The notes beneath the pieces were generated by a model. That model had not been told where the DNA came from. It saw only the letters and a program-made list of their open reading frames with translations, and did not search any database. A stretch of 64,000 nt of DNA, taken from sequence record PQ464595.1. One strand, written 5' to 3'. This document shows positions 1 to 64,000 of this stretch, in pieces. Each line of letters opens with the position of its first letter. Position 1 is the first letter of the stretch. The translations under genes were made by a program, and so were the position numbers.

Positions 1-1
1 T

Positions 2-532
2 GATATTTCTAAATTAAGTTTAGAAAAACGATTAGATGAAGGTTTTTGGACACAGAATGATGTGTATGAAAATACTGGTGAATTCAAGCAATTCAAAGAA
101 AAAACTACCACATTTGATGAAGTTAATGGTGTAGTTACTAATACCTACATATATGAATTGATGGATTTAGAAGTAATTAAGACTGATTTAAAAGGTCGTG
201 TTGATTCTAAACGAGACAATGTATATTTCGGTGGTTTTGAATTCAATGGTAAAACATTCTTTTCAGGTCTAAGCAATCGCAGTAATATTCAACTTATGCT
301 ACTATCATCTCTAGTAGATGAAGCAAATTTCCCATCAGATTTAGTATGGGATACAGTTGATGGTGAAAGAATCCCAATGGATTTAGCAACCTTCAAACAA
401 TTTGCTCAAGCACTTGTTGATTTTACTAGAACAATATTCATTAAAACACGTGCTATCAAAGATGCTATCGAAGCTGCTACAGATTACGATTCAATTCGTG
501 CTGCGGCATCGTGGGATGGTGAAGCTCTATAA
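2..532 (+). CDS. Tail-fibre-associated protein, DUF4376-like C-terminus; 5'-truncated by window edge
   Basis: Frame is open from nt 2 (DISKLSLEKRLDEGFW...) into the 62..532 ORF. KRDNVYFGGFEFNGKTF...WDTVDGERIPMD...IKDAIEAA resembles DUF4376 tail-assembly proteins. Confidence 0.6.
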   Translation, partial: DISKLSLEKRLDEGFWTQNDVYENTGEFKQFKEKTTTFDEVNGVVTNTYIYELMDLEVIKTDLKGRVDSKRDNVYFGGFEFNGKTFFSGLSNRSNIQLMLLSSLVDEANFPSDLVWDTVDGERIPMDLATFKQFAQALVDFTRTIFIKTRAIKDAIEAATDYDSIRAAASWDGEAL

Positions 533-536
533 TATT

Positions 537-563
537 AAAAGCCAGGAAACACCTGGCTTTTTT
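537..563 (+). terminator. Intrinsic terminator
   Basis: GCCAGG-AAACA-CCTGGC followed by TTTTTT, just after the stop codon. Confidence 0.8.
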
Positions 564-574
564 ATTTGTTTTTC

Positions 575-582
575 GATAAATA
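575..582 (+). promoter_or_regulatory. T4-like late promoter (GATAAATA)
   Basis: TAAATA core ~30 nt upstream of ATG 615; same core recurs before other structural genes. Confidence 0.6.
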
Positions 583-614
583 TGTTACTTAAGCAATTTT
601 AATAAGGAAAATAT

Positions 615-1367
615 ATGGCTTCATATGTATTAGTTCAAAAAATCAATGATAATTATACTGTTATAAAATTTCTCCCAATCGGTGAATATCTTACTGCTCC
701 AAATTCAGGTTATCCAAATATGCGAGTATTGTATGGTGATAAAAATTATCCAGGAGATAATGTTTATGCTGACACTATGGAAACATATGTCTTGAATAGA
801 ACATCTGCTGGCTTTTGGTTTATGGATTATGTTGAAAGTGGATTGCAAAATATAAATGGTGAAAATCTTGAATTTAGAACGTATTCTCATTCTGAAGATG
901 AGTTTTTTGAAACTGGAAAATTTAAAAAATTAACAGTAATAAGAACAAATTACAATGTTGACCAAGATTTGGATAGTGTAAAAGAGCAGTTAAAAAATTC
1001 CACATTGTGGAAGAAAGATGAAAAGATCAATGTTCCATACACATTTAAATCTAAAGATAATAAAATTACTTTAGAATTTAATATGAGTAATGACGCTCGT
1101 TATAATATTCGTGATGCATATTATCTACAACAAGATATGAAAACTGCCGATATTTCATTTTTCATAGATAATACTCCAATTCGCTTACCTAAAAAATACA
1201 TCAAAGAGTTATTCATTGAAGTTAACGAATTTGTATACAATATTTTAGTAGAGTACCAACGACAAATTTTGAATATTGAGTCTTCAGACAATATATATGA
1301 TGCTCAAGTGAGTGCTGCTTGGGTATATGAAGGTTTTGAAATACCAGAACGCACTATTGCTAACTGA
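615..1367 (+). CDS. Putative tail-fibre-associated protein, DUF4376-like C-terminus
   Basis: 250-aa ORF with AAGGA RBS; C-terminal half echoes the upstream gene; tail-module context. Confidence 0.45.
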   Translation: MASYVLVQKINDNYTVIKFLPIGEYLTAPNSGYPNMRVLYGDKNYPGDNVYADTMETYVLNRTSAGFWFMDYVESGLQNINGENLEFRTYSHSEDEFFETGKFKKLTVIRTNYNVDQDLDSVKEQLKNSTLWKKDEKINVPYTFKSKDNKITLEFNMSNDARYNIRDAYYLQQDMKTADISFFIDNTPIRLPKKYIKELFIEVNEFVYNILVEYQRQILNIESSDNIYDAQVSAAWVYEGFEIPERTIAN

Positions 1368-1374
1368 TTAATTT

Positions 1375-1405
1375 AAGGCTGACTTATGTTGGCCTTTTGT
1401 TTTTT
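1375..1405 (+). terminator. Intrinsic terminator
   Basis: AAGGCTGAC-TTAT-GTTGGCCTT plus T-tract. Confidence 0.7.
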
Positions 1406-1414
1406 GTACCCCAT

Positions 1415-1422
1415 AATAAATA
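1415..1422 (+). promoter_or_regulatory. T4-like late promoter (AATAAATA)
   Basis: TAAATA core upstream of ATG 1454. Confidence 0.6.
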
Positions 1423-1453
1423 CAGGATACAACCATTATCTGAGGAATTTTTA

Positions 1454-3358
1454 ATGAGTGCATATACTATAAAAGGTGCTGAAGGTGTTGTGATAAACAG
1501 TACTTACTTTTTAGAACTACCAAAAGCTCCTACAAAACAAACAACCTACGCTGAACGTGCAGGTATGATTCGTTATAACTCAGAATGGAAAGCATTTGAA
1601 GGTGTAATTGAATTCACAGATGGTTCTCTGAACTATCGTCGTTTCGCTCAACTTGACGAAAACGGTCAACTACAAACTTCCCAATTACCAGATTCCATAA
1701 CAAGTGGTATGCAATGGATTGGTACTTATGCTCCTATTTCTGATGATATTGATCCACCTGTTGACTCTGCGTATACAAAACTTCCCGCTCCAAGTTCTAC
1801 CAATTCTGGTCAGTACTACATTGTTCGTGGGATTTATGACGCTGCTGTAACCCACTTTAGAGCGAATAACCCAACTACTGCTACAGTAACATTCACTCCT
1901 ACAAACCCAAGTTCAGCAGGAAACTGGATTCAAATCAAATATTATATTGATACTGACCCAACAAATACTGCTAATAGAATAGTAGTTGCTGCTTTTGCTC
2001 GTATCGTAACTGCTAGTATTCCAGCTACAGGACATGAAGGATTAGTGTCTTTAGCAAATAATGATTCAAACTTAACTGCTGCTTTTACTTCAGTAGTTGA
2101 TAAAACTGCTGAATTAGGTCTAACCGATGGTGACTGGATTATCAGTACTGGAACAACAAATGTACGTCTTCGTCAGAATCGTGTAAGCGTTAGTGCTGGT
2201 GCTGTATCATTCGATAGAACCTTTATGACTTCTTCAAACCGTCCATTTACTAACAGTTCAGGCACAGTACAAACTATCATAGATAGTATTCTATTACAGG
2301 GTCTACGTCGCACAGGTGACACCATGTACAACGATGGAGGTACTGGTGCTGGTAGGTTAGGTGTGGTTTATGGAACCGCTACAGCCCCTTCTATCGCGTT
2401 TAACAACAATACATTTGATGCTACAACTGATCCAGGTGTGAATCCTGCGTTATGGTCAGACACTACAACTGGTATCTTCCATCCTGCTACTGGCAGTATT
2501 GGTTTATCGGCTAGTGGTACTGAGCGTTTACGTGTTAGTCCTACACAATTAATTGTATATCCAGTAACTTCAAGTACTGCTACTGTTCCGAATATTCTAT
2601 TCTCAGCAACAGGAAACACAGTACTTGGTATGAATGTGAAATCGAACACAATTGATTTCGTTAGCAACAGTGCTGTAAACGTGAGTTTAGCACAAGGCTT
2701 AAGTACTTTCAATGGAAATGTTGTAGTAACTGGAAACACCACTCTAGGTGATGCTAGTACTGATACTTTAACGGTTAATGCTGCTAGTACATTTATAGGA
2801 ACAACCCTATTCAATAATGCAACAAACCGTTTTGCTGTCGGTGCGGTATTAAGTTCAGGTGCTACGTTGTCATTTGAAGGTACTAACACCGCAACAATCA
2901 CTAAAGCTGCTACTGAACTACGTTTCAATATGGATAACTTTAATGATGTATCTGTTTATGATGGAAGTACATTGCGTACTAAGATTAACAGATATGGTAT
3001 TCAATTACCAGTAATTAATCCAATTGATGATGCGGTTGGTGTTGATGGGATGATTGCCTACAGTACTGAACGTAGTACTGTTATTCAAAAGACAAACGGT
3101 ACATGGACAACTGTAGGTTCAGGTGGTGGGGTAGCGACTACTTTCACTACTGCGAATTGGGTCTTGAGTGGTTCATATTATACATATACCATTACTAATC
3201 CTAACATTCAAACTATAGTAGTTCAAGAACTTTCTGGTTCTAACTATAGTCCAGTTGAAGTTGATTCAATAGTAATTTCTCCAACGAATGCTGTACTTTC
3301 AGTACCTGCTTCGCCAGATTTACGTTTCAACGGTCGTGTTATCGTACAATATCAATAA
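1454..3358 (+). CDS. Virion structural protein (tail fibre/baseplate-associated), Thr/Ser/Gly-rich
   Basis: Start moved from TTG 1397 to ATG 1454 (GAGGA RBS, late promoter in between). Beta-rich composition and FNGNVVVTGNTTLGDASTDTLTVNA segment typical of tail fibres. Confidence 0.65.
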   Translation: MSAYTIKGAEGVVINSTYFLELPKAPTKQTTYAERAGMIRYNSEWKAFEGVIEFTDGSLNYRRFAQLDENGQLQTSQLPDSITSGMQWIGTYAPISDDIDPPVDSAYTKLPAPSSTNSGQYYIVRGIYDAAVTHFRANNPTTATVTFTPTNPSSAGNWIQIKYYIDTDPTNTANRIVVAAFARIVTASIPATGHEGLVSLANNDSNLTAAFTSVVDKTAELGLTDGDWIISTGTTNVRLRQNRVSVSAGAVSFDRTFMTSSNRPFTNSSGTVQTIIDSILLQGLRRTGDTMYNDGGTGAGRLGVVYGTATAPSIAFNNNTFDATTDPGVNPALWSDTTTGIFHPATGSIGLSASGTERLRVSPTQLIVYPVTSSTATVPNILFSATGNTVLGMNVKSNTIDFVSNSAVNVSLAQGLSTFNGNVVVTGNTTLGDASTDTLTVNAASTFIGTTLFNNATNRFAVGAVLSSGATLSFEGTNTATITKAATELRFNMDNFNDVSVYDGSTLRTKINRYGIQLPVINPIDDAVGVDGMIAYSTERSTVIQKTNGTWTTVGSGGGVATTFTTANWVLSGSYYTYTITNPNIQTIVVQELSGSNYSPVEVDSIVISPTNAVLSVPASPDLRFNGRVIVQYQ

Positions 3359-3360
3359 CG

Positions 3361-3390
3361 AAAAAAGGGAGCCAATGGCTCCCTTAATTG
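3361..3390. terminator. Terminator between convergent genes
   Basis: AAAAAA-GGGAGCC-AAT-GGCTCCC-TT between 1454..3358(+) and thyA(-). Confidence 0.8.
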
Positions 3391-3391
3391 T

Positions 3392-4324
3392 TTATACAGC
3401 CATTGGTGCTTTAATGGTTGCATCTGGATTGTAGTTTTCTAACCTGAATGATTCCATAGTGAAATCTTCAATATTAGTAATACTCTTATCAATCCATAAT
3501 GTAGGCATTTCACGTGGTTCACGAGAAAGTTGCTCTTGTACAGCATCAACATGGTTCTGATAGATGTGAACATCACCACCAATCCAAATAAATTCACCAA
3601 CTTCTAAATTACATACTTGTGCAAGCATATGAGTTAGTAATGAATAAGAAGCAATATTGAATGGTACGCCCAAGAACAAGTCAGCACTACGTTGATATAG
3701 AGTGCATGATAATTTTCCATCTACTACAAAGAATTGTGAGAATGCATGACAAGGTGGCAATGCCATTTTATCAAGTTCACCGACATTCCAAGCTGAAAGA
3801 ATATGTCTACGAGAATCAGGATTATTTTTCAATCCATCAATCAGTACTTGAATTTGGTCAACAGTACGTTCAAATACCGTGATTCCTTGGTATGAATCAA
3901 AAGCAATTTGTGAATATCCAGCATCCGTATATTCAGAATGGTCAATATATGAAGGAACTACTATATGATCTTTCCAATCCCGCCATTGTTTACCATAAAC
4001 TGGCCCAAGTTCACCATCTGAATATCCTAGAGCAACACCCTGATTTAAGTAGTTGTCAGTCCAGATAGTTTTTTTAGATTCATCACGAGTGCCATGAAGT
4101 ATTTCACATAGTCTACGTTCATCATGTGAACCTTCTAAGAACCATAGAAGTTCTGAACTCATTGCTTTCCATGCTAAACGTTTTGTTGTCGGGGCAGGAA
4201 AATACTCAGAAAGGTCAAACCGCATTGTTTCACCCATGAGTTTAATCGTACCTACACCAGTTCGATCAGTACTGAGAGTACCAAATTCAAGAACTTTTTT
4301 GTATAGATCGTGTAATTGTTGCAT
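3392..4324 (-). CDS. thyA: Thymidylate synthase
   Basis: DRTGVGT, ELLWFL, LGPVYGKQWR, PDSRRHI, ALPPCH (catalytic Cys), YQRSADLFLGVPFNIASY. Confidence 0.97.
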   Translation of the reverse strand: MQQLHDLYKKVLEFGTLSTDRTGVGTIKLMGETMRFDLSEYFPAPTTKRLAWKAMSSELLWFLEGSHDERRLCEILHGTRDESKKTIWTDNYLNQGVALGYSDGELGPVYGKQWRDWKDHIVVPSYIDHSEYTDAGYSQIAFDSYQGITVFERTVDQIQVLIDGLKNNPDSRRHILSAWNVGELDKMALPPCHAFSQFFVVDGKLSCTLYQRSADLFLGVPFNIASYSLLTHMLAQVCNLEVGEFIWIGGDVHIYQNHVDAVQEQLSREPREMPTLWIDKSITNIEDFTMESFRLENYNPDATIKAPMAV

Positions 4325-4655
4325 TCTCTTTCCTTAGAGCGTAATTCTCTTCTTTCAATTGTCTAATAGTACATTGTAAGCTAAGAATCATGTTTTCCAT
4401 GTTATATTGTAATTCAGTTAATTGATTATCAAAGCGTTCTTGTTCATCTTCAACAGCAGTTCGAAGTTCCCGTTTCATTTCTAGTTCATGCTCAGCATGT
4501 AATTCTTCAATACCTTCAGCATGGTCTTTTTCCATTTGTTCGATAATCTTGTCGTACATTTCAGTAGTGCTTTCAGTACCAGCTTCAACACCTTCTTCAT
4601 ATCCAACATCGTAACCAACATCATATTGATCGGGAATTTCTACTATATCTGTCAT
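4287..4655 (-). CDS. Acidic coiled-coil hypothetical protein
   Basis: Start moved to ATG 4655 (TAATG overlap with upstream stop); heptad-like Glu-rich sequence. Confidence 0.6.
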   Translation of the reverse strand: MTDIVEIPDQYDVGYDVGYEEGVEAGTESTTEMYDKIIEQMEKDHAEGIEELHAEHELEMKRELRTAVEDEQERFDNQLTELQYNMENMILSLQCTIRQLKEENYALRKENATITRSIQKSS

Positions 4656-5242
4656 TAGATAAACTTCGCTTCGAATGCTCGTAAGTCTTCTTCTGTGGCA
4701 CGACGAGTACCAATACCTGTCCAACGGCCATGTGGGGCAGGAACAGAATCAACTTGAATGAATTGTTTTGTTTCGTTACAGTACTTATATGTTAACTTAT
4801 CCATAATATCGAAATGATATATTTCTTTATCATCATCATTTAAATCTAAGTACATTTGTACAGCCCATGCTGTTCCACCGTCTAATTGAGTAGGAGATAC
4901 TAATTGACCAATGGTATATACACGTTCAGTACAGTAAATTTGATAGCTATTTCGAGCTAATAGGTTATAAACATATCCCCAACGAGGAACACTACGCCCT
5001 AAAGCTTTATTTGCTAGTTTGAGTTGAACACCTACTTCATTACAAGTAAGCATTTCAAAAGGGAGTTCTAGTACTGTCTCAGGTTTGACATGTGCTTTAT
5101 GACCTTTAAATGAAAAGTGGACTTCTTCATGTCCATTTTCTTCAGCCCACAAACCAAAAAGGCGGTCAGCTCCCGCCGCCCCGCCACTAAAACATACGTT
5201 TTCGAACTCTAACAACATCTCTTGGAGATCATTGCGATTCAT
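4655..5242 (-). CDS. SLOG-superfamily (YspA-like) nucleotide-binding protein
   Basis: CFSGGAAGAD, GGTAWAV and WTGIGTR motifs. Confidence 0.6.
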   Translation of the reverse strand: MNRNDLQEMLLEFENVCFSGGAAGADRLFGLWAEENGHEEVHFSFKGHKAHVKPETVLELPFEMLTCNEVGVQLKLANKALGRSVPRWGYVYNLLARNSYQIYCTERVYTIGQLVSPTQLDGGTAWAVQMYLDLNDDDKEIYHFDIMDKLTYKYCNETKQFIQVDSVPAPHGRWTGIGTRRATEEDLRAFEAKFI

Positions 5243-5537
5243 CTTCTTTATCTTCCAGTTTAGATAATAATTCTTTTATACTATCATCTTCTAAAGAGAA
5301 ACTTGTTTCAAGAGCCGCTAGAATAACGGCTGCTGATTTAATCAGAGATTGACGGAATTCGTCAAACGAAACATGTTTATCAGGTCTAGAAGCACTTTCA
5401 AATAAGTAATACCCAGCTAAACCTGTCCAATCATTTTTCGTTTTAAGATGATCTGCTAAAGTATTTGGGTTGCTCATTTGTTTCAAGCGTTCTTCAATAA
5501 CTAACTGAAGAATTTCTTCCCTACTAACTTTTGACAT
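5229..5537 (-). CDS. Small all-helical protein, possibly MazG-like NTP pyrophosphatase fold
   Basis: EERLKQ...W...E...FRQSLIKSAAVILAALE resembles E-x-x-RQ...ELIQVAAVA MazG-like proteins; degenerate. Confidence 0.35.
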   Translation of the reverse strand: MSKVSREEILQLVIEERLKQMSNPNTLADHLKTKNDWTGLAGYYLFESASRPDKHVSFDEFRQSLIKSAAVILAALETSFSLEDDSIKELLSKLEDKEDESQ

Positions 5538-6217
5538 TATTCACCTTTACGTTCTTTCAATGCTTTTTTGACAAGTTCTACTGCTTTAGCTTGTGAGATA
5601 CCTTCTGGTAGTTCAAGATACAGTGAAGTAGGTTCTTGACTGTCGGCTTCAACTACTGAATCAGATGGTAGTACTACTGCTTGTGCTTGTGGACGTAGAC
5701 TTGGGTCTAGGTTATAAGCACGTTCGCGGTTTTCACGAGCTAGAGTTTCATACTTAGCTGCTTCTTCAAGCAGACGAGAAACGATAGTACCTTGTTCTGG
5801 ATACTGAGTCTGCGATTGTTGTTGTTCGTAAGGGTTGAATGCCTTAACAGTACCGTCTTGTACAACAGCACTTTGGTTAATTTCTTCATTCAATACGTTT
5901 AGAGGAATCTTATTAGATCCACCAACATGCATATCAATATCTAATGTACTTTGTTTACGGATATAGCCCATACGGTGAAGTACGGAAAGCATGTTTCCAC
6001 CTTCTAGGGTTCCGATTTTATCCATTACATCCCATAGTTCAATAGAACTCTGACCACGACCGAGAACAAGCTCAGCAACGCGATTAGAATAAACTTCAGG
6101 TAGAGAGTCACGATAGACTACTAGGCAATGGGATTGATCATTTTCCAGTTGACGCCATACGACGAAAACACGAGATCCAGTACTACGGACTACACCACAA
6201 TGACGTACAATACTCAT
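5537..6217 (-). CDS. Conserved jumbo-phage hypothetical protein
   Basis: 226-aa ORF, TAATG-coupled; HCGVV...HCLVV...GNMLSVLH pattern. Confidence 0.7.
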   Translation of the reverse strand: MSIVRHCGVVRSTGSRVFVVWRQLENDQSHCLVVYRDSLPEVYSNRVAELVLGRGQSSIELWDVMDKIGTLEGGNMLSVLHRMGYIRKQSTLDIDMHVGGSNKIPLNVLNEEINQSAVVQDGTVKAFNPYEQQQSQTQYPEQGTIVSRLLEEAAKYETLARENRERAYNLDPSLRPQAQAVVLPSDSVVEADSQEPTSLYLELPEGISQAKAVELVKKALKERKGE

Positions 6218-6218
6218 A

Positions 6219-6458
6219 TTATTCTCCTTCTACGTCAGAAGCTGTTTGTTCTGCTTGAGCAGCACGAGCTTCTTGATCTGCTAGAATAGCAGCGGAGAAA
6301 TCCTGGAAACGTGAAACGATTGGTGCAACTTCGGATAGTTCTTTAACATTAAAGATACCACGCTCAATTGCTGCTTCCATGATTTTTGTAGCATTGATAA
6401 TATCAATGAATTCTAGTTGTGGTCCAACTACGGTTTCTTCTTGAATTTGATTGCTCAT
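6219..6458 (-). CDS. Conserved jumbo-phage hypothetical protein
   Basis: Start moved to ATG 6458 (GGAG RBS; promoter at 6492-6520); AIERGIF motif. Confidence 0.7.
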   Translation of the reverse strand: MSNQIQEETVVGPQLEFIDIINATKIMEAAIERGIFNVKELSEVAPIVSRFQDFSAAILADQEARAAQAEQTASDVEGE

Positions 6459-6491
6459 TATATACACTCCATGTATTTTTGAATTATCTAT

Positions 6492-6520
6492 ATTATACCA
6501 CAAAAGTGTGGTACGTTCCA
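6492..6520 (-). promoter_or_regulatory. Class B promoter: TGGAAC-N17-TATAAT, extended TGTGG
   Basis: Same geometry at 9441, 25177, 32545 and 41273. Confidence 0.7.
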
Positions 6521-6563
6521 AATATTTGTAAGATCGCCATCCTTGACGACCTTCTATTTAGTA

Positions 6564-7946
6564 TTATGCTGTTTGTTGTTCAAGTTCGTAATGAACCGTG
6601 ACACCAAATGGAGCATCTACTTTAGGGTTTGAATGGATTACAAACAACGTATCACAGTAGTTTGGATCACCCCATGAACCCCAAGGCTCACCATCCGTAA
6701 ACATTACTAATTGTTTTGGACAGTATTCATCGGCTTTCATGAAATCCCACACAGCAGTAAACAATGTACCGCCGCCGCCCCGCACAGGATATTCAAGAAT
6801 TTGTTGTTCTTGTCCAGTACGATAATCATGTACTTCATAGATACTAGTATCAAATGTCAGTACGCGAATTTTGAATTGTGAGAATTGTTTGGTCATACCA
6901 TAAACTTCTGATAAGAAGTCTTGTAACCATTCAGAACGGATACTTCCAGATGCATCAAGTGCGATACAAATGTCAATATCTTCATCAGGTTTCATTCCAG
7001 GATAGATAGGCATCCCATAACCAATACCATTAGACCATGAACGGCGGTTAGGCATCATATAAGTTACGTCATTCTTAATCAAAGAACGTAAAGTGCGGTT
7101 AAGTTTAGTACGCCAATCAATCTTAGGTTCTTTAAAGTCCTGAACCATAGCACGAATTTCTGGTGGAGCACCTTGTGCCATTGCTGCGTTGATCATTGCA
7201 TCTTTGAATGATTCCATGAATCCTTCCAATTCCTCTTGTGAGAAACCAGGAAGATCATCAAATTCCATTCCTTCACCATCACTATTTTCACCATCGTCAT
7301 CATTATCTGATGGAGAACCTTCTTGTGGAATATCGTGTTGGTCTAAAGTACCACCACCAGTTCCTTTACCACCATTACCTGATTCTTCCTGTTCCTTACG
7401 TTCCATAAGGATGTTATAGATTTCTTCTGCTGGCATCTTATCGAAGTCAGGAGAGAATAACCAGGATTTGCGAATTTCACCAAGTGCTTTATCACGTGCG
7501 ATAATTTGGTTAATTGCGAAATCAGCAGCTTTGTTCCACATCTTAGCATCACGTGTACCTTTACGCAAGAAGTGGTTATATGCACAGTGAAGAATTTCAT
7601 GACACACTGCTGCGATTAAGTTCTGTTGAGTTAATCCGTTAAGAGCATCATTAATTTGTTCAGTAGTGAGGTCATCAATACTTTCACGAAGCATATCTTC
7701 ATATTCTTGGCGACGTGAAGGGTCTTCAACACCCATAATGAATTCGACATTGTAGTACAGATGTTTACCATCTACTGCCAATGTACGACACCAAGTATTA
7801 TTAGCTACAGGTTCCAACTGAGCAGCCAGTACTCCAAAGAATGGACAAGCCATAATCATAGTTGTACGTGCCACAATAAGTCTGTCAAAACATTCTTGTG
7901 CTAATTCATCCGATACTTTGTACGGGATACGTTTTTTCTTTGTCAT
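6564..7946 (-). CDS. DUF2201-type HExxH metallopeptidase-like + vWA domain protein
   Basis: CHEILH motif, acidic linker, MIDAS DASGS, RGGGGTLF, MFTDG; start moved to ATG 7946 (GAGGA RBS). Confidence 0.85.
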   Translation of the reverse strand: MTKKKRIPYKVSDELAQECFDRLIVARTTMIMACPFFGVLAAQLEPVANNTWCRTLAVDGKHLYYNVEFIMGVEDPSRRQEYEDMLRESIDDLTTEQINDALNGLTQQNLIAAVCHEILHCAYNHFLRKGTRDAKMWNKAADFAINQIIARDKALGEIRKSWLFSPDFDKMPAEEIYNILMERKEQEESGNGGKGTGGGTLDQHDIPQEGSPSDNDDDGENSDGEGMEFDDLPGFSQEELEGFMESFKDAMINAAMAQGAPPEIRAMVQDFKEPKIDWRTKLNRTLRSLIKNDVTYMMPNRRSWSNGIGYGMPIYPGMKPDEDIDICIALDASGSIRSEWLQDFLSEVYGMTKQFSQFKIRVLTFDTSIYEVHDYRTGQEQQILEYPVRGGGGTLFTAVWDFMKADEYCPKQLVMFTDGEPWGSWGDPNYCDTLFVIHSNPKVDAPFGVTVHYELEQQTA

Positions 7947-7963
7947 AAAATCCTCAAATAACA

Positions 7964-7983
7964 AAAGGGGCATAAGCCCCTTT
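7964..7983 (-). terminator. Hairpin/terminator between AAA and vWA genes
   Basis: AAAGGGGC-ATAA-GCCCCTTT; T-rich flank on the minus strand. Confidence 0.5.
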
Positions 7984-7989
7984 GTTTTA

Positions 7990-15922: not shown

Positions 15923-15933
15923 TTAGTACTCCT

Positions 15934-17524: not shown

Positions 17525-17550
17525 AACTTTATGGATCTATTGAGTACTAC

Positions 17551-27797: not shown

Positions 27798-27822
27798 AAA
27801 AGTACTCCCTTGTATTGTACTG

Positions 27823-39807: not shown

Positions 39808-40257
39808 TTATTGTAGTACTTTAAGTTTATATAAGATGCTCTCAACAAAACTCATTATATCTTCGAGTGTGTTTACAGAGCCATATTCGCCAAGTCCATC
39901 CAATATTTCATGTATTTTTACGCAATGTTTTACGTATTCTTCGAGTAGAGGAATTGCTTCTTCTAAAGGTTGGAAAACATAAGTACTGCCAGTACTGAAA
40001 ATTGGACCACGTTCTGCCATCATTCCTTCAATAAAGGAATCAACATATTCTGGCAATCCTTTATAGAATTCATCCAGTTCAATGTGTTTAGAATAGAACT
40101 TGCACTGTAAGTGCCAGTGGTGTGCTTGGGATTCAAGAAATAGACTATTCTCTACGAATTTAATTAATATATCATCGTGAGTGTCGTCAGTAGTTTCTAC
40201 ATAATCAATCATACTGCGTATGTCGTTAGGATCAAAATGTTCGCTCATAGGTATCAT
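39808..40257 (-). CDS. Ferritin/Dps-like four-helix protein
   Basis: AHHWHLQ...SKHIELDEFY...VDSFIE resembles the Dps H-W...H..LDE..D..E pattern. Confidence 0.6.
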   Translation of the reverse strand: MIPMSEHFDPNDIRSMIDYVETTDDTHDDILIKFVENSLFLESQAHHWHLQCKFYSKHIELDEFYKGLPEYVDSFIEGMMAERGPIFSTGSTYVFQPLEEAIPLLEEYVKHCVKIHEILDGLGEYGSVNTLEDIMSFVESILYKLKVLQ

Positions 40258-40648: not shown

Positions 40649-40719
40649 TGCCTAACTCCGTTAGTCAAGAATTTTCGTTAGTACTCACGTTGTTCGTACT
40701 TAACTCAATTCCTATAAAC

Positions 40720-46919: not shown

Positions 46920-47780
46920 TTATAGATAGTTTTCTCGCCCATATTGTAATAGCCTTTCAATGATTAGTTCGTAGTACTGGTCGGACTTTTCAATAAGAAC
47001 ACAATTACGATTAAGCTGTACAGCACTTAATGCTGTTGTTCCTGAACCACCAAATGGATCAAGAATCCAGTCCTGTTCTTCAGTACTGAGTTTGATAAAG
47101 AAGTTCGGTATGTCAATAGGATAAACCGCAGGATGACCAATATTCAAGTTACTGGTACTACATGTAAGAACGTTACTTGGGCGTACCATATCTTCAGCAA
47201 CACGCTTAGACATGTTCATAGTACTGCCATTAGTGACGTTGTGTTCACCTTTGTTTTTACGTTTCTTCTCACTTTCCAGATATTTTGAAGTACTTTGTAC
47301 CTTCACTTCATCAGGAAAGAATTTATATTTTGAGGTGTGATTAAACTGAAAGATTCGTTCGAATCCATCCTTCAATCGGGTTTTAGCACCAGTTGGGAAA
47401 GGATTAGTCTTGTTCCAAATGTACTCGTCGCTCCAGTTATATTCGTCAGACATAGCAATAATGGTGCGATACACATAGGTATCACGCTTACCTTTATCAA
47501 CATGTTCTTTGATATTAAAGAAGTACGAGCCATCTTCATGAATGACATTCATAATATCAGTACTGATATTCTTGTACCATTCAGGAAAGTCTTCAGGACT
47601 TATGCTGTCATACACATCTTTACGCTGTTCAGCGTAAGGAGGGGATGTAATAGCAGAATTGAACTTAACTTCCGATTCGTGGAGTTCTTTAAGCACTTCA
47701 GCACAATCACCATTAATTACGATGATTGTGCTCGTGCCTAACTCAATAACTTGATGCGGGGATTGTCCGGTATATTCCAT
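46920..47780 (-). CDS. Beta-class amino-DNA methyltransferase (N4-C/N6-A), SPPY type; no adjacent restriction enzyme
   Basis: NGDC, catalytic ITSPPY, YIWNK, HPAVYP, SAM-binding ILDPFGGSGTT. Confidence 0.92.
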   Translation of the reverse strand: MEYTGQSPHQVIELGTSTIIVINGDCAEVLKELHESEVKFNSAITSPPYAEQRKDVYDSISPEDFPEWYKNISTDIMNVIHEDGSYFFNIKEHVDKGKRDTYVYRTIIAMSDEYNWSDEYIWNKTNPFPTGAKTRLKDGFERIFQFNHTSKYKFFPDEVKVQSTSKYLESEKKRKNKGEHNVTNGSTMNMSKRVAEDMVRPSNVLTCSTSNLNIGHPAVYPIDIPNFFIKLSTEEQDWILDPFGGSGTTALSAVQLNRNCVLIEKSDQYYELIIERLLQYGRENYL

Positions 47781-56405: not shown

Positions 56406-56417
56406 ATGTAAATCCTT

Positions 56418-59111
56418 TTACCAGTTGATTGTTCCTGAATCAGTAGGTAGACCATAACTCACAGGGATTGAAGAACCCGCAGCTTCTAGTGAAGTGCCAA
56501 ACACATCTAAACGACTGCGTTTAAAAATGTTAATTGTTTCAATTTGTAGAGCATTGGTTGTTACTGTACCAATCCAGAATGTGTTATATGCGGTTGTTCC
56601 TGATTCAGCAATTACCGTTTCCGTTGCAATATATTTTGCTAATCCTTCTTGCATTACTGCGTATATGTAAAAAGTACTATTAGCTGGGTTGGCTTTCACT
56701 GTTGACAGATCAATATTTTGTACTGGCAATGTGAACGATTTACCACTGAGTAGTAACGATGTTGGTTCTGTAAAGTAAATTATAAACCCTTGAGCAACAT
56801 CCTGTGATGCTAATAGAATTGGAGAACCTACATCAGTCCACGCATTATATTGTGCTAGAGTAGTACCACATGAACGGAATATTAATCTAACAGCATCGTC
56901 AGCCCATGAAGCAACATAATCAATATATCCAAAACCAATTCCTGGAGCGGCGAACGGCATTGAACCAACATTAGGAACATGGTTCTGATAGGTACTAGTC
57001 GGAATGAAACTATCCATTTGACCAGTACTTTTTGTTACTTTAGCTCTGAAAGTAATAGCATTACTATCACCAGTAGTTTTATAAATGTATGGATCAGCAC
57101 CACCAATGAAGTAGAATGTTCCTGCATCATAAATTGTCAATCCAGTGCTTGCTTGAGATACACCATAGGTTGCCGGTTGAGCAATTGAATCAAATTGACC
57201 AGAATCTTCATAAACAAGTCTCTTTAACGTTAATGATGTAATAGCTCCAGTTCTTGTATTAACATTCACTTCCACCACTTTAACATAACTTGTTTGTGTT
57301 GTGGTAACTGCTGTAATTAGAGCAAATGCTGGACAATCAGTTTGTTGTGGAACATACAGAGTAATATTACTTACATTTGATGAATCCAAAGTAATTGTAC
57401 TAGATGCTAATTGTGAATTTTTAAATGATGTTAAAAGCGAATTAGCAATACTCATTGAGCCAGTACTATTCATATCACCATCATATGTTACACCAGATGA
57501 AATTTTATTATTCTCAATGAACATACCACCATTTGTTGTAACTGTACTTCCATTAATAGTACTAATGAAGAAACGATGATCATTATCGTATGTAGTTCTG
57601 TAACGATTAACTGTTGGTTGATAACCTTGAATTGTTCCAAATGATACTGAATCAAAAGTATATGTAGCACCTGGAACATATTGGTTAACTGAGTTAACCC
57701 ATGAGCCGATCTGAGAATTTACTCTATATCTATTATTAGGCAACCACTCCATGCTCATTAAATTAGAACCAACTGGTGAACCATATTGATAGTTCATATT
57801 TGATTGAGTATAATTTATGCTTGTTGGATAGCTACGAACCTGTAAAGTATCATATACTGATGTTGCATTTGGATAATTACCACGACTTATTAACGTGTTA
57901 CCTTGGTTTGGAGAAGCGATAGCTATTGTTGTACCATTATCAAAATAATAATATCCCATTACATAGTTTGAACGTTGGGTATTAATAGTTGGAATTGGAT
58001 CAGTAGAATAAGTTGAACCAGATACATTAAGTACTGTCCCACTACCTGGATCTGTAATTGTCAATGGAGCAATATTGCCAGCTTCAAGAGTCGCAGTCTT
58101 AGTTGTCATATTCAATAAGAAACTAAATGTATGTTTAGGACGTGCATTTCTAAGTGCTGTTGTACACCAAGCATCACCAACAACTCTAAGTCTAATTGTT
58201 CCAGCACTATTTTGAGCAGCGTATATATCAACACCTGTCATAAACAAACCTGCACCGGTCGTAGCTGCTGGAATTAACATATAAGGATTAGCAGCAGCAC
58301 TAGTACTTTGAAGTAATGGTATAATTGTTAATTCAGTACTATTAGTAACTGTACCATAAAAGCCTGTAGTACTCCAAGTAGCATAATTCGTAATAGTATA
58401 TGAACCACCTGCTTGTACTTGAGAAATAGGAATTGACCTAATTTCAAATGATAAATTAGAACCAGTACTGACTTCTGTAAAGAAGTAAATGTTGGTATTA
58501 CCAGTCATCACAAAACGCACTGTACCACTCGGCACAATTGTTGCTAGTGGGATTAGAATACCAGTATGTTGTGTATCATTTAATGTACCATTCATCCATG
58601 ATACAAATACATATGGATCATTGGATGTATTAAATGCCACACCAGAAGTCACTCTGTTGTCTGTAGCATACAAATACTTTGCTGTATAAGTTGATCCGAA
58701 ATAACCTGGTTTGTATTCTTTATTTGTATTAATTGATGTTGATAATGTTGTAGTACTTAAAATGTTATTCAAATATGAATAGTAAACACCACGTTTAGCA
58801 CCATTTGTGCCCGGACGTAGAATCATTAATGTTCCATCATCTTCGACGAATAGTTTACGGTATCTGTAGCTTATTACATCACTCGCACCTTCATAAGAAC
58901 CGTAAACTCCAGCAGGAATGTAGTTAAAGGAACCATAGTGAGATAGTGGTAATACACTAACTATTTTGTTGAATTCATCTTGGGTGTAAGAATCGATCTC
59001 TAGACTTCCTGAAGTACTAAAGTTTGCTCCCTCAACTGAACGTGTTAAGTTTCTTCCTTGAGAAGAAGCATATCTTCCAACCTGTAAATTTCCTAGAATT
59101 TTTTTAGCCAT
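56418..59111 (-). CDS. Tail fibre/spike-like structural protein, paralog 1
   Basis: EDDGTLMILRPGTNG; ASQDVAQGF...ANPANSTFY...GSSIP; late promoter upstream. Confidence 0.75.
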   Translation of the reverse strand: MAKKILGNLQVGRYASSQGRNLTRSVEGANFSTSGSLEIDSYTQDEFNKIVSVLPLSHYGSFNYIPAGVYGSYEGASDVISYRYRKLFVEDDGTLMILRPGTNGAKRGVYYSYLNNILSTTTLSTSINTNKEYKPGYFGSTYTAKYLYATDNRVTSGVAFNTSNDPYVFVSWMNGTLNDTQHTGILIPLATIVPSGTVRFVMTGNTNIYFFTEVSTGSNLSFEIRSIPISQVQAGGSYTITNYATWSTTGFYGTVTNSTELTIIPLLQSTSAAANPYMLIPAATTGAGLFMTGVDIYAAQNSAGTIRLRVVGDAWCTTALRNARPKHTFSFLLNMTTKTATLEAGNIAPLTITDPGSGTVLNVSGSTYSTDPIPTINTQRSNYVMGYYYFDNGTTIAIASPNQGNTLISRGNYPNATSVYDTLQVRSYPTSINYTQSNMNYQYGSPVGSNLMSMEWLPNNRYRVNSQIGSWVNSVNQYVPGATYTFDSVSFGTIQGYQPTVNRYRTTYDNDHRFFISTINGSTVTTNGGMFIENNKISSGVTYDGDMNSTGSMSIANSLLTSFKNSQLASSTITLDSSNVSNITLYVPQQTDCPAFALITAVTTTQTSYVKVVEVNVNTRTGAITSLTLKRLVYEDSGQFDSIAQPATYGVSQASTGLTIYDAGTFYFIGGADPYIYKTTGDSNAITFRAKVTKSTGQMDSFIPTSTYQNHVPNVGSMPFAAPGIGFGYIDYVASWADDAVRLIFRSCGTTLAQYNAWTDVGSPILLASQDVAQGFIIYFTEPTSLLLSGKSFTLPVQNIDLSTVKANPANSTFYIYAVMQEGLAKYIATETVIAESGTTAYNTFWIGTVTTNALQIETINIFKRSRLDVFGTSLEAAGSSIPVSYGLPTDSGTINW

Positions 59112-61421: not shown

Positions 61422-61422
61422 T

Positions 61423-63228
61423 TTAGCTTCCGTGTTTGATTCTTTGTATAACTTCTTGTTGTTTACCAGTATTGAAAGGTCTACTATTCGGAGCACTAAG
61501 ATAACCAGATACTCTACGAATAACTGACATAGTACCTTCTTCTCGGTTATCACATTGTGGACAATGGAAACCAACTTTATCTACCGAAAATTCACCTTCA
61601 AATTCACACTTATAACACTTATCGACTGGTTGGTTAATTCCAAAATATGGAATACGCTCATACGCATAATCGATCAGTACTTCTAAGGCTTTTAAATTGT
61701 TAGAAAGATTCGGAGTCTCAACATAACTGATGTTTCCACCATTGCTCAAGTACGCAAAACTTTCTTCATAATCAAACTTCCTGAAAGGAGATGATTCAAT
61801 CCATACTGGTTGGTGGAATGAATTTGTTATGAAATCTCTTTTTAGTACATTTGGATATTTTTCTTCTATTGCTTTCGCAAATTTATAACATAAGCTCTCT
61901 GCTGGTGTACCATATAAACTAAATGCGATAGTACTTTCATCTTTGAACTGTTCACATTTGTATTTCATATAGTGCAAGATGGATTTACAATAATCCTTAC
62001 TTAACTGTTGTAGCATAATTTCAGAACATTCAGCTAGTCCAACATATCCAATACTGATACTCGCATATCCATCATAGAATAACTGGTCAATTGTATCATC
62101 AGCATTTAAACGAGCAATAGCACCTTCCATAAACATAGTAGGGTTCTGTCGAGCTTTCATTGTTTTCAATCGTTCTACACGATTCATTTGTGCTCGATAA
62201 GCCATTGTCATGTGATAATCCAATTTACCGAAGAATTCACCATCGGATTTAGATTCAAGAGCAAGTAATGGAAGATTAATAGACACTACGCCTAAGTTAA
62301 ATCTACCATCATATTGTTCAGTACCGTTATGTTCCCATTTACCAAGGAATGAACGACAACCCATAGGCGATACAGCCATAGAAGTACTGCCAGTTACTTT
62401 CTTATTCAATGGTACTGATACGAAGTCTGGATAAATGCGTTTAGCACTGGTTTTCATCGCTTGCTGTTTAAGGTCATAATTAGGATCAGACTCTTTCATA
62501 TTCACCCCATCTTCTAGGAAGAAGACAACTTTAGGAAATACTGGAGTACTGCCATCTACACCTAAACCTTTCTCATGTACTTTTAAGTACGAATCGGTAA
62601 TCATCTTACCGAATTTAGAGGTGTTTAGACCCATTGTAATCGTAACAAAGGGGGTTTGACCGTTACTGCTTGTGATGGTATTAACCTGGTACAGAAGTGC
62701 TTGCATAGCGTCGTACACCTCTTTCTGGAGTGTCTTCTGTACGTATTCATCCGGTAGACCGAATTCTTTTTGTTGCTCTAGGAGCTTGTTATAGGACTTC
62801 TGAACGTATGGTTCTAGACCGAAGTCAATATGTGCTAGTGTTTGACCACCGTATTGACTTGCTGAAACTGCTAGTACTATTTGTGTCAGTACTGTACTTG
62901 CTACCCCAATACTATTAGGTGTACCAACTTGTGCGTTTCCAATCTTGAAACCGTTCTCCAACATGTCTCTGTAATTAACTAAACAACAGTTAGTCAAAGG
63001 GCTTATGAAGTAATCAAGATCATGTATATGTCCATATCCGTTCTTGTGCCAAAGCATAAGTTCTTCTGAGATTTCATCCTCAGCGAAATGCTTAGATAAA
63101 ATACCTGCTAGTAAGTCACGATGCGTGTTTACAATCTTCGCATCCTTATTAGCATTCTCATTCATTATATCTTTATTACTTTGGTTTATTAGTGCGGATA
63201 CATCATTATACAGTCTGTCGTTATTCAT
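61423..63228 (-). CDS. nrdD: Anaerobic (class III) ribonucleotide reductase, no ATP-cone
   Basis: NENANKD, HIHDLD, TNCC, NGQTPF, MGCRS, NLGVVSINL, TPAESL, YITNS-like FITNS, CYKC...CPQC, RRVSGYL glycyl-radical site. Confidence 0.97.
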   Translation of the reverse strand: MNNDRLYNDVSALINQSNKDIMNENANKDAKIVNTHRDLLAGILSKHFAEDEISEELMLWHKNGYGHIHDLDYFISPLTNCCLVNYRDMLENGFKIGNAQVGTPNSIGVASTVLTQIVLAVSASQYGGQTLAHIDFGLEPYVQKSYNKLLEQQKEFGLPDEYVQKTLQKEVYDAMQALLYQVNTITSSNGQTPFVTITMGLNTSKFGKMITDSYLKVHEKGLGVDGSTPVFPKVVFFLEDGVNMKESDPNYDLKQQAMKTSAKRIYPDFVSVPLNKKVTGSTSMAVSPMGCRSFLGKWEHNGTEQYDGRFNLGVVSINLPLLALESKSDGEFFGKLDYHMTMAYRAQMNRVERLKTMKARQNPTMFMEGAIARLNADDTIDQLFYDGYASISIGYVGLAECSEIMLQQLSKDYCKSILHYMKYKCEQFKDESTIAFSLYGTPAESLCYKFAKAIEEKYPNVLKRDFITNSFHQPVWIESSPFRKFDYEESFAYLSNGGNISYVETPNLSNNLKALEVLIDYAYERIPYFGINQPVDKCYKCEFEGEFSVDKVGFHCPQCDNREEGTMSVIRRVSGYLSAPNSRPFNTGKQQEVIQRIKHGS

Positions 63229-63279
63229 TAGACACTCCTTGTCAAATTGTTAGGTAGTTTATTTAAACCACTTAAAAAT

Positions 63280-63306
63280 AAAATACCCCATACTAAGGGG
63301 TATTTT
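63280..63306 (-). terminator. Intrinsic terminator
   Basis: AAAATACCCC...GGGGTATTTT plus T-tract. Confidence 0.7.
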
Positions 63307-63338
63307 CTTTGATCTAGATCAATGTTTTAGCACTTTGG

Positions 63339-63455
63339 TTAACGTTTGTTCAGGAAGCTACAGAAGTCCAAAATAACAAATATTACTAAAGCTCCAATGG
63401 AACTTAAGGCAATAACATAGAACCAAAACATAATCATTAAGAAAGTATAAAGCAT
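63339..63455 (-). CDS. 38-aa membrane protein, absent from the ORF track
   Basis: MLYTFLMIMFWFYVIALSSIGALVIFVILDFCSFLNKR. Confidence 0.55.
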   Translation of the reverse strand: MLYTFLMIMFWFYVIALSSIGALVIFVILDFCSFLNKR

Positions 63456-63457
63456 TT

Positions 63458-64000
63458 TTAGACCCCTTTAGCCTCGAAGCCGTACTTTTCGCTCAGTACT
63501 TCAAGGATACGAATTGGCATTTCTTCATGAGTATATTCACGCATGTCAATGAATGGAATATTCATTTCTTCCAAATTGCGAACAAAGATAGCATCAATTT
63601 CTTTTGCCTGTTCCAGAGTCTGTGTGCGACCGTACTGATCATATTCTGGTTTACGTGGGAGCAGGAATACAACATTCTCATATTGATTATATAGCTCTAA
63701 CGCAATTTCAGAACTTATATTATCAACATCATCATAGAATTCATTGTACATGATACCATTCAGTAGTGAAGCATCAGATACGACAAAATCCACCTTTCCG
63801 TTTAAACGGAATAGGCGGTGATTTTGTTGAGCAGTAATTAGAACCTGGTCTTGCATTGCCATTTTGTTTTCATCATAAACATAGTCTTTGATTACTTCAG
63901 TGACAATCTCAACTTTCTGTTTTGACTTTAGTTTTAGTGCTGCGAATAGACCAGCAGCAGTTGTTGATTTACCGCAGCACGGTCCACCAACAAGATTAAT
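63458..64000 (-). CDS. NadR/AAA_28-type P-loop kinase, 5'-truncated by window edge
   Basis: Frame is open to nt 64000: INLVGGPCCGKSTTAAGLF...VTEVIKD, then VVSDASLL, GRTQTLEQAKEID. Confidence 0.8.
   Translation of the reverse strand: MNLVGGPCCGKSTTAAGLFAALKLKSKQKVEIVTEVIKDYVYDENKMAMQDQVLITAQQNHRLFRLNGKVDFVVSDASLLNGIMYNEFYDDVDNISSEIALELYNQYENVVFLLPRKPEYDQYGRTQTLEQAKEIDAIFVRNLEEMNIPFIDMREYTHEEMPIRILEVLSEKYGFEAKGV

Follow-up and report, generated by a model that had tools for sequence, protein, structure and literature searches.

Genome-wide enrichment of the palindrome AGTACT in enterobacterial Rak2-like jumbo phages suggests a possible lineage-specific recognition site

The word (C)AGTACT(G) is best explained, with a probability that we put at about one half, as a lineage-specific, positively selected and dyad-symmetric recognition site of the enterobacterial Rak2-like jumbo phages, read by a putative factor. 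The window analysed is a stretch of 64,000 bases (PQ464595.1, 248001-312000) from Erwinia phage Kaldavass, whose whole genome measures 366.5 kb. Exact counting finds 170 copies of AGTACT in the window, one per 376 bp, where a mononucleotide model at 37.5% G+C expects 21.3 (observed/expected 8.0); the initial annotation, which by eye had tallied about 165 sites against some 20 predicted at about 36% G+C, was close, and its examples at 1499, 1812, 2144, 3062/3074, 39982/39991 and 62873/62888 are all true sites. Genome-wide, 1,114 copies stand against 121 expected (9.2x; about 3.0 per kb, or one per 330 bp), and every 10-kb bin is enriched, by 5.8- to 18-fold. The runner-up among hexamer palindromes in the window, GAATTC, reaches 1.9x, and the remaining NGTACN words have 0-57 copies each. 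No prior report of AGTACT enrichment in Rak2-like phages was found in the searchable literature. The sites discussed by position, and the field that they belong to, are as follows.

1..64000, unstranded: AGTACT field, 170 sites, 2.7 per kb, all frames
3062..3079, unstranded: site pair 12 bp apart
39982..39996, unstranded: site pair 9 bp apart, within the DUF5856 gene at 39808-40257
62873..62893, unstranded: site pair 15 bp apart, within the anaerobic ribonucleotide reductase large-subunit gene
15925..15930, unstranded: intergenic AGTACT between two tail-tube genes
17543..17548, unstranded: intergenic AGTACT in the sheath / tail-tube gene gap
27801..27806, unstranded: intergenic AGTACT
40680..40685, unstranded: intergenic AGTACT at a divergent gene junction

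The excess persists under nulls that preserve amino acids and codons, the comparison set beforehand as the one that could overturn it: shuffled windows hold 30-62 copies. A within-gene synonymous-codon shuffle that keeps protein and codon usage gives a mean of 42.7 (sd 5.2; z = 24.7), with 58 as the highest count among 300 shuffles; a codon-order shuffle gives 30.2 (z = 28.4), and a synonymous shuffle that also keeps all dinucleotides gives 61.8 (z = 21.8). Markov models of orders 0-3 predict 19-74 copies for the window and order 4 predicts 140, a figure inflated because that model is built on AGTACT's own 5-mers.

As the initial annotation had proposed, sites occupy all three reading frames (87 as AGT-ACT, 56 as xxA-GTA-CTx and 23 as xAG-TAC-Txx in the window, with 4 at gene boundaries or in non-coding DNA) and extend outside genes; conservatively defined non-ORF DNA holds 56 copies against 4.4 expected, a 12.7-fold enrichment, and comparison of these 56 sites revealed no longer common context. 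Synonymous choice is strongly bent towards the word: 62% of Ser-Thr dipeptides in Kaldavass are written AGT-ACT against 14% expected, 57% of the possible x-Val-Leu and 39% of the possible x-Tyr-x positions have been turned into AGTACT, and 990 of the 1,734 synonymous opportunities in the genome (57%) are occupied. Ser-Thr and Val-Leu dipeptides are themselves more frequent, amino-acid usage having moved toward the site. Selection works on the DNA, not on protein or codons.

The flanks of the hexamer bear preferences that are dyad-symmetric and independent of frame, C at -1 and G at +1 being elevated in the three frames and G at -1 and C at +1 depleted; CAGTACTG, with 194 copies against 4.4 expected, is the most over-represented 8-mer of the genome. 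Information content is close to zero outside position +/-1, apart from a weak T at +/-3-4, and a search for sequence conserved past the 6-8 bp core (a longer repeat, a promoter or a terminator) found none. The symmetry could also be explained by an enzyme that reads a single strand and needs its site on both. Over genes, the sites of the window are spread in a Poisson-like manner and have no positional bias inside them. Occupied opportunities are more evenly placed than random subsets (CV 0.924 against 1.033 +/- 0.032), with 52 gaps over 1 kb instead of 69; no value so low arose in 3,000 permutations. Close pairs (within 30 bp) are not in excess genome-wide, with 83 against 97 expected.

The terminal-repeat region is the densest. 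In phage CBB, where it is the genome end, the repeat carries 6.4 sites per kb (19.5x), and its homologue in Kaldavass reaches 15-18x, with an occupancy of 73% against 54-58% elsewhere. Small early genes, whose proteins are less constrained, could account for part of this gradient, although synonymous occupancy is raised there as well. True Chi octamers (GCTGGTGG) are enriched in the Kaldavass genome as well (34 against 3.5). Eight of them lie within 15 kb of the terminal-repeat homologue's own sequence, where AGTACT also peaks, and this clustering shows end-processing nucleases at work in shaping that region. Conservation of AGTACT is 1.3-2.3 times that of average hexamers. Alignment of five genomes placed 50-56 sites in each, 16 common to all five and 43 private to one; sites turn over while density stays constant, and the short Kaldavass branch shows gains at 0 of 112 one-off opportunities, no excess over the roughly 1 expected. 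Selection favours many sites, even coverage without long gaps and top density at the terminal-repeat region.

All ten Rak2-like genomes sampled (Kaldavass, XbC2, CBB, GAP32, BF, Hallingskeid, 121Q, Munch, RaK2 and XaC1) are enriched, by 5.7- to 11-fold, with 8.1x in Hallingskeid, 5.7x in 121Q, 5.8x in Munch, 7.2x in RaK2 and 11x in XaC1. A T4-like phage has 6 copies against 9.5 expected, and one 50-kb sample of E. coli K-12 has 3 against 11.6 (0.06 per kb), so that density is roughly 50 times higher in the phage than in that single sample. AGTACT is the ScaI restriction site, and lytic phages usually deplete 6-bp palindromes as restriction targets; the expectation that phages normally deplete this one agrees with coliphage phi92 (0 against 9.8 expected) and with a PA5oct-like Pseudomonas relative (1 against 10.2). 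That relative has TCTGCA/TGCAGA at 6.5x on both strands, which may be its own word. Avoidance of palindromes is extreme in Kaldavass too, 29 of the 64 hexamer palindromes having no copy in the window and 24 of them, together with GCGC, none across the 366 kb genome. Avoidance of the ScaI/Eco255I site concerns the same word and is seen in phi92 and the PA5oct-like phage; in Kaldavass the sign is reversed, and the 9.2x genome-wide excess rules out restriction-site avoidance of AGTACT there. With some 1,100 copies at even spacing, a word shunned by other phages therefore looks like a selected "self" mark.

Positive selection, as the initial annotation had supposed, thus agrees with the protein-preserving nulls, the occupancy, the non-ORF enrichment, the conservation and the even spacing, and its reading of the word as a DNA-level mark stands. 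The cause that it had favoured does not. This was the product of the following gene, taken to mark the phage's own DNA:

46920..47780, - strand: N4-cytosine-type DNA methyltransferase, 286 aa, PF01555, SPPY at residue 46

The enzyme is indeed an N4C-type methyltransferase, M.PvuII being its best solved relative, and its gene itself holds 5 AGTACT sites, but its orthologues are confined to the genera Mimasvirus and Eneladusvirus; the gene block is absent from the syntenic place in 121Q, and no match was found in the partial loci of other clades. Since Hallingskeid, 121Q, Munch, RaK2 and XaC1 lack the gene and are comparably enriched, enrichment does not track the presence of this methyltransferase, which does not drive it. 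Its cellular homologues lie in prophage-like contexts, with no ScaI-type endonuclease next to them. Self-marking by this enzyme is thus a very unlikely explanation, even if AGTACT may still be its target in the genera that carry the gene.

Another phage methyltransferase could nevertheless target AGTACT, the methylated site being what is read. This reading, which overlaps the preferred one, is a real possibility although a minority one, and in it a dense methyl mark would take the place of the hypermodified bases by which T4 separates its own DNA from that of the host. Kaldavass encodes three DNA methyltransferases (N4C PF01555, C5 PF00145 and Dam-like PF05869); the Dam-like gene is shared by all enriched clades and has no listing in PA5oct-like phages, the C5 gene occurs in the Mimasvirus, Hallingskeid, Asteriusvirus and Alcyoneusvirus clades, and unprotected copies in such numbers would be risky because other phages of these hosts avoid the word. 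Against this, half of the enriched clades lack the N4C gene, the Eneladusvirus and Munch groups have no listed C5 orthologue, phi92 has no AGTACT despite a 50%-identical C5 enzyme, and the Dam-like enzymes share only 43-48% identity between clades. Moreover, TGATCA is tolerated (1.06x genome-wide) while GGATCC (0), CGATCG (0) and AGATCT (0.5x) are low or absent, a pattern that fits GATC methylation because BclI is blocked by Dam methylation whereas BamHI, PvuI and BglII are not, and that suggests GATC as the site on which the Dam-like enzyme acts. Were AGTACT methylated at its cytosine, it would offer purine-mC targets to McrBC, yet K-12 MG1655 is a recorded host of 121Q-like phages. The neighbours of the three Kaldavass genes belong to no informative family, the analysis found no reader, binder or nuclease for AGTACT, and being a methyltransferase target supplies by itself no reason for enrichment. 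On the unlikely side is the proposal that some phage enzyme of replication or recombination prefers to start or to cleave at AGTACT, for which a T4-type primase (six bases, of which five are copied and one is cryptic), a T4-type topoisomerase II (with the four-base GTAC stagger inside A|GTAC|T) or a nicking or processing nuclease modulated as Chi modulates RecBCD are candidates. Even coverage with few long gaps is what priming or end-processing needs, a palindrome serves both strands at once, Kaldavass has genes for a gp61-like primase, a DnaB-like helicase, topoisomerase II subunits, UvsX/UvsY and SbcCD-like and RecB-like nucleases, and the Chi cluster described above speaks for end-processing. 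T4-like and PA5oct-like phages, however, have the same enzyme families without enrichment, the terminal-repeat peak is not predicted by the primase model, and we know of no primase or topoisomerase with such hexamer specificity.

A by-product without function, arising from mutational or repair bias (very-short-patch-like), from codon or dipeptide preference or as spillover of palindrome avoidance, is highly improbable and already largely refuted. The genome is indeed extremely sculpted at the oligonucleotide level, as its missing palindromes attest, and NGTACT near-cognates are slightly elevated genome-wide (1.8-3.2x), but a codon, dipeptide or composition artefact is rejected by the shuffles and by non-ORF DNA, where enrichment is strongest, and a very-short-patch-type repair drive by the C-to-T neighbours AGTATT and AATACT, which are at expectation rather than depleted (39 against 41 and 42 against 43 in the window; 1.07x genome-wide). 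Amino-acid usage is displaced toward the word, other Ser-Thr codon pairs contain no avoided palindrome, and a context-blind bias would be unable to avoid gaps, yet occupied positions do. Least credible of all is that the phage exploits or titrates a host factor, the enterobacterial nucleoid-occlusion protein SlmA. Enriched phages are recorded mainly on Enterobacterales and the Pseudomonas relative is not enriched; Pseudomonas, to our knowledge, lacks SlmA. The SlmA-binding site GTGAGTACTCAC has the identical hexamer at its core and belongs to a factor of the same host order (PMC3020112), but the outer bases that it requires are missing from the phage. The G and T at its positions 1-2 are not enriched, G at -1, a purine that SlmA accepts, is the most depleted flank base (6-9%), and the whole genome has no full site and only 18 and 20 half-sites against 31 expected; the lack of G-T-purine before the core and of the mirror bases thus speaks against SlmA-binding sites. 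The phage has no SlmA homologue, and phi92, on the same host, has no AGTACT at all.

The preferred reading, a recognition site of the phage lineage, has partial parallels in known systems. Chi (GCTGGTGG) with RecBCD is likewise a short, genome-wide over-represented word of which each copy is useful, here with 3.0 AGTACT per kb in the phage against 0.06 in the E. coli sample, and it lets a nuclease treat self unlike foreign DNA, a role that for AGTACT is hypothetical. Chi is asymmetric and strand-oriented, occurs about once per 4.5 kb and is recognised by RecC in single-stranded form; AGTACT, in comparison, is palindromic, present once per 330 bp and symmetric in its flanks, and orientation dependence or strand skew of the Chi type is absent from this self-complementary word. 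GATC, with Dam, MutH and SeqA, the analogy drawn by the initial annotation, is a palindromic mark useful through chromosome coverage, as the evenly spaced AGTACT would be, although no methyltransferase could be linked to AGTACT and the phage annotation contains no MutS, MutL or MutH; in E. coli, GATC is not known to be strongly over-represented (1.2x in the 50-kb sample). The uptake sequences of Neisseria and Haemophilus are self-recognition words that occur about once per kb, also inside genes, and shape codon and amino-acid usage; they are 9-12 nt long and non-palindromic, function when competent bacteria take up DNA, and do not double as restriction sites. Primase sites of T4 (GTT/GCT) and T7 (GTC-based pentamers) are needed regularly on both strands, and a T4-type pentamer primer with one cryptic base makes six bases; these sites are, however, specified by three bases and, as far as we know, not enriched, and a link of the Kaldavass primase to AGTACT is hypothetical.

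In mechanistic terms, a factor of the phage lineage with two-fold symmetry would read AGTACT in duplex DNA, with a per-site, coverage-type benefit that would set phage DNA apart from host DNA. The benefit might be protection from, or control of, nucleases, or the recruitment of replication or recombination functions, with a logic like that of bacterial Chi or uptake sequences. The other suggestion of the initial annotation, that the word is bound by a phage protein which organises, replicates or packages DNA, fits the data, the binder being hypothetical. Because other phages of the same hosts purge the word, the phage probably shields it, by methylation or via the binding factor itself. More tentatively, in T4-related jumbo phages without hypermodified bases a dense palindromic word may stand in for base modification and label the entire chromosome as "self": a factor of the phage or its virion would read (C)AGTACT(G) every few hundred bases, so that phage DNA is spared or repaired and host DNA is shut off or degraded. 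If true, the word would be the viral equivalent of Chi, its armour strongest on the terminal repeat, the CBB genome end.

The palindrome AGTACT, the ScaI/Eco255I site, occurs 170 times in the window against 21.3 copies expected from base composition, an 8.0-fold excess; the initial annotation had claimed about 165, and all the example positions it cited are genuine. Among the hexamer palindromes of the window, the runner-up reaches 1.9-fold and 29 of the 64 have no copy at all. The excess had been predicted to vanish under a null preserving codons and amino acids if it were spurious, and it persists: shuffling synonymous codons inside each gene, which keeps the protein and its codon usage, yields 42.7 ± 5.2 copies (maximum 58, n = 300), shuffling codon order yields 30.2 ± 4.9, and a synonymous shuffle that also keeps all dinucleotides yields 61.8 ± 5.0. 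These nulls are conservative, as the codon usage they keep is already inflated by AGTACT, and since all of them stay far below 170, the enrichment is real. The full genome carries 1,114 copies (9.2-fold), with an excess of 5.8- to 18-fold in each 10-kb bin, and the top 8-mers are all derivatives of AGTACT; the extended form CAGTACTG, with C before and G after the word, is present in 194 copies genome-wide where 4.4 are expected. The remaining top hexamers on the plus strand of the window (CAGCAG, CACCAG, CCACCA, TTCTTC and TCATCA) are non-palindromic and strand-asymmetric, probably reflecting for the most part a codon-level effect of minus-strand genes, and some of the other top hexamers overlap fragments of Chi.

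The window corresponds to bases 248001-312000, plus strand, of Erwinia phage Kaldavass, a T4-related jumbo myovirus of 366,556 bp belonging to the Rak2-like group, with relatives that include XbC2, CBB, GAP32, BF, fHe-Yen9-04, 121Q, PBECO4, Munch and RaK2. The window is 95.5% coding, with nearly all genes on the minus strand, and two of its entries deserve comment:

Window 6564-7946, minus strand: gene annotated as an HNH endonuclease, matched in Pfam by DUF2201 (putative metallopeptidase) and a VWA-like domain.
Window 50895-59111, minus strand: three neighbouring ORFs of 914, 917 and 897 aa, hypothetical in the record.

Pfam finds no HNH domain in the first product, and the label in the record is probably wrong. 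The three ORFs occupy the stretch of lowest G+C in the whole genome (34% in the 300-310 kb bin), look like tandem paralogues and are possibly fibre-like. Outside the window, at about 74.04 kb, unannotated DNA holds a tandem AGTACTAGTACT (positions 24021-24072 of genome piece L009) flanked by an apparent tRNA T-arm on one side and an apparent D-arm on the other; ARAGORN calls no tRNA there, and the two stretches may be abutting tRNA remnants.

The AGTACT signal resides in the DNA rather than in the proteins. Sites in the window are read as Ser-Thr (87), x-Val-Leu (56) and x-Tyr-x (23); AGT-ACT spells 62% of Ser-Thr dipeptides, where codon usage predicts 14%, and the word is carried by 57% of the possible x-Val-Leu places and 39% of the possible x-Tyr-x places. 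Across the whole genome, 990 of the 1,734 positions at which synonymous codons could write AGTACT are occupied. Ser-Thr dipeptides are themselves raised (142 versus 101 expected; reverse order Thr-Ser, 104), as are Val-Leu dipeptides (131 versus 107; Leu-Val, 84), so that the word biases even the order of amino acids. In a conservative set of non-ORF DNA (13.1 kb), 56 copies stand where 4.4 are expected, and these 56 sites share no longer context. In every frame, C is raised before the word and G after it, and the converse flanks, G in front and C behind, are under-represented; in one example, G at +1 reaches 46% against a codon-position background of 13%. A two-fold symmetry of this kind, independent of frame, is what recognition of duplex DNA should leave behind, and a requirement for the word on both strands predicts the same equally.

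Along the genome, per-gene counts are consistent with a Poisson distribution, and the sites show neither a positional preference within genes nor heterogeneity between them; there is no helical phasing and no clustering, pairs within 30 bp being slightly fewer than random (83 versus 97 expected). The occupied opportunities are more evenly spread than equally large random subsets drawn from all synonymous opportunities (CV 0.924 versus 1.033 ± 0.032; none of 3,000 permutations as low), and gaps above 1 kb between them number 52 rather than 69. Opportunities in site-poor stretches are thus used preferentially, which is beyond the reach of a context-blind mutational bias, and such even coverage indicates a function that wants AGTACT within reach everywhere.

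Superimposed on this coverage is a density peak of 15- to 18-fold at 1-30 kb of the Kaldavass genome. The greater part of this stretch, about 2-18 kb, corresponds by homology to the 22.5-kb terminal repeat of CBB, with the order inverted. In CBB, the repeat holds 143 copies (6.4 per kb, 19.5-fold), compared with 13-fold in the adjoining 22 kb. Synonymous occupancy is 73% in the terminal-repeat homologue versus 54-58% elsewhere, so that the gradient reflects more than relaxed protein constraint alone. The Kaldavass genome also contains 34 Chi octamers (GCTGGTGG) where 3.5 are expected, eight of them in one orientation within 15 kb of the repeat homologue (1205-14953), and seven lie in matching orientation in the CBB repeat (9311-21027 of the CBB sequence L027). 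This concentration of Chi in the repeat homologue shows that nuclease processing of DNA ends shapes the region, and suggests that one genome end is protected against RecBCD. It also makes a Chi-like role for AGTACT attractive but unproven.

Comparison with relatives shows how the word is maintained. Aligned AGTACT sites are kept more often than average hexamers in XbC2 (0.82 versus 0.61), CBB (0.55 versus 0.32), GAP32 (0.57 versus 0.30), Hallingskeid (0.35 versus 0.15) and 121Q (0.24 versus 0.15). Over 24 kb aligned among five genomes, each carries 50-56 sites; 16 (30%; control median 15%) are at the same position in all five, and 43 occur in a single genome only. Counts being constant despite the sites restricted to one genome, density is maintained through gains and losses, and selection bears less on individual positions than on how many sites there are and how they cover the genome. 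The short Kaldavass branch shows gains at none of 112 opportunities, where the roughly one expected is too few to be informative. The commonest replacements at lost sites are AGTATT and AATACT; since two of the three frames accommodate them without an amino-acid change, they have no bearing on cytosine methylation.

AGTACT in relatives and comparison genomes (samples of 30-50 kb per relative)
XbC2, Rak2-like: 7.6-fold
CBB, Rak2-like: 7.3-fold
GAP32, Rak2-like: 7.1-fold
BF, Rak2-like: 6.4-fold
Hallingskeid, Rak2-like: 8.1-fold
121Q, Rak2-like: 5.7-fold
Munch, Rak2-like: 5.8-fold
RaK2, Rak2-like: 7.2-fold
XaC1, Rak2-like: 11.4-fold
Phage 30-3, PA5oct-like (Pseudomonas): 1 versus 10.2 expected
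MLF4, T4-like: 6 versus 9.5 expected
phi92, unrelated coliphage: 0 versus 9.8 expected
E. coli K-12 (50 kb), host sample: 3 versus 11.6 expected

The enterobacterial Rak2-like phages have this excess as a derived character. Outside this lineage AGTACT is avoided (phi92, phage 30-3), in keeping with the earlier statement that phages deplete such palindromes, and the word is about 50 times denser in the phage than in the single host sample counted. In its small sample, phage 30-3 over-represents another hexamer on both strands, TCTGCA/TGCAGA (26 and 25 copies, 6.5-fold), together with CTGCAG (15 versus 2.4 expected); TCTGCA/TGCAGA may be a different signature word of this sister lineage. XbC2 and XaC1 have Xanthomonas vesicatoria as host on record, though the group is otherwise enterobacterial; the XbC2 sheath gene is 94% identical to that of Kaldavass, and the recorded host of both phages may deserve a second look.

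Phages usually purge restriction-type palindromes, a rule that AGTACT reverses, and to our knowledge Rak2-like genomes otherwise rank among the most palindrome-free. Restriction-site avoidance in Kaldavass is extreme: 24 hexamer palindromes are missing from the entire 366.5 kb (18-47 copies of each expected), and GCGC is absent where 494 are expected. GCGC is also missing from the samples of 121Q, RaK2, Munch and XaC1 and present in the PA5oct-like, T4-like and phi92 samples. The set of purged palindromes varies by clade: GATATC is lacking in Mimasvirus and Eneladusvirus but at ordinary levels in Hallingskeid, 121Q, RaK2 and Munch, and TTGCAA and GTGCAC are purged, among the clades compared, in Kaldavass and XbC2 only. 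This variation probably stems from different host restriction repertoires. Genome-wide, TGATCA is at expectation (128 copies), GGATCC and CGATCG are absent and AGATCT is halved; given which restriction enzymes Dam blocks, this is the pattern expected with GATC methylated by Dam of the host or by a Dam-like enzyme of the phage.

The initial annotation had proposed that the word is a positively selected mark and, as one of its candidate explanations, the target of a methyltransferase of the window:

Window 46920-47780: SPPY methyltransferase (PF01555), with SPPY at residue 46; nearest solved relative M.PvuII (N4-cytosine).

Selection for number and even coverage stands, while this enzyme as the source of the excess is largely excluded. 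Its orthologues (at least 85% identical) are confined to Mimasvirus and Eneladusvirus, the next phage match (53% identity) is in an unrelated Cellulophaga phage, and 121Q lacks the entire gene block at the syntenic place; clades without the gene are equally enriched, so the enzyme does not explain the excess, although it could act on AGTACT where present. No palindrome is tolerated only in the clades that have the gene, GATATC showing the opposite pattern. Cellular homologues lie in prophage-like surroundings beside other methyltransferases or family-less genes, with no ScaI-type endonuclease among these neighbours. Kaldavass has two further DNA methyltransferases. One, the C5 enzyme (PF00145), is found in the Mimasvirus, Hallingskeid, Asteriusvirus and Alcyoneusvirus clades, with no listing for the Eneladusvirus and Munch groups; a copy 50% identical is present in phi92, which has zero AGTACT. 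The Dam-like enzyme (PF05869) is the sole methyltransferase found in all enriched clades, with only 43-48% identity between them, and its gene has a conserved neighbour of roughly 170 aa (three sequences aligned). In Pfam and PHROGs, the neighbours of all three methyltransferases match only families of unknown function. AGTACT could still be a methyl mark; cytosine methylation would create McrBC targets, yet K-12 MG1655 is a recorded host of several 121Q-type phages. AGTACT could also be an action site for a primase, topoisomerase or nuclease. A functionless by-product is largely excluded by the shuffles and the even spacing, and a repair drive was rejected, AGTATT and AATACT showing no depletion. 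The SlmA-binding sequence has an AGTACT core (PMC3020112), and this identity is likewise largely excluded: there is no full binding site, the flanks are wrong and no phage SlmA homologue was found.

AGTACT is thus shown to be a lineage-specific, dyad-symmetric DNA word, positively selected for number and even coverage and strongest in the terminal-repeat region. It is a putative recognition site for a factor of Rak2-like phages, and its recognition would label the whole chromosome as 'self'; the benefit may lie in protection from or control of nucleases, in recruitment of replication and recombination proteins, or in a methyl mark that is then read. Chi, uptake sequences and KOPS are genome-wide functional words of bacteria. 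The closest parallels are Chi, uptake sequences and GATC/Dam, whose over-representation and coverage AGTACT matches; it lacks the polarity of Chi and the required flanks of SlmA sites, and it fails the co-occurrence test with the SPPY methyltransferase. The literature searched holds no link between AGTACT and Rak2-like phages, and the CBB, PA5oct and Sharanji papers and a jumbo-phage review do not mention the enrichment.

In practice, AGTACT offers a simple metagenome diagnostic of the Rak2-like lineage, and ScaI digestion would reveal in one step any modification of the DNA. That a group of 350-kb phage genera retains about 1,100 copies of a restriction-type palindrome, despite the cost in codons and amino acids, points to a sequence-specific system that operates over the full length of the phage chromosome and may be a reader, a protector or a replication/recombination enzyme. 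Such a system could account for the ability of T4-like phages lacking modified bases to discriminate their own DNA from that of the host.
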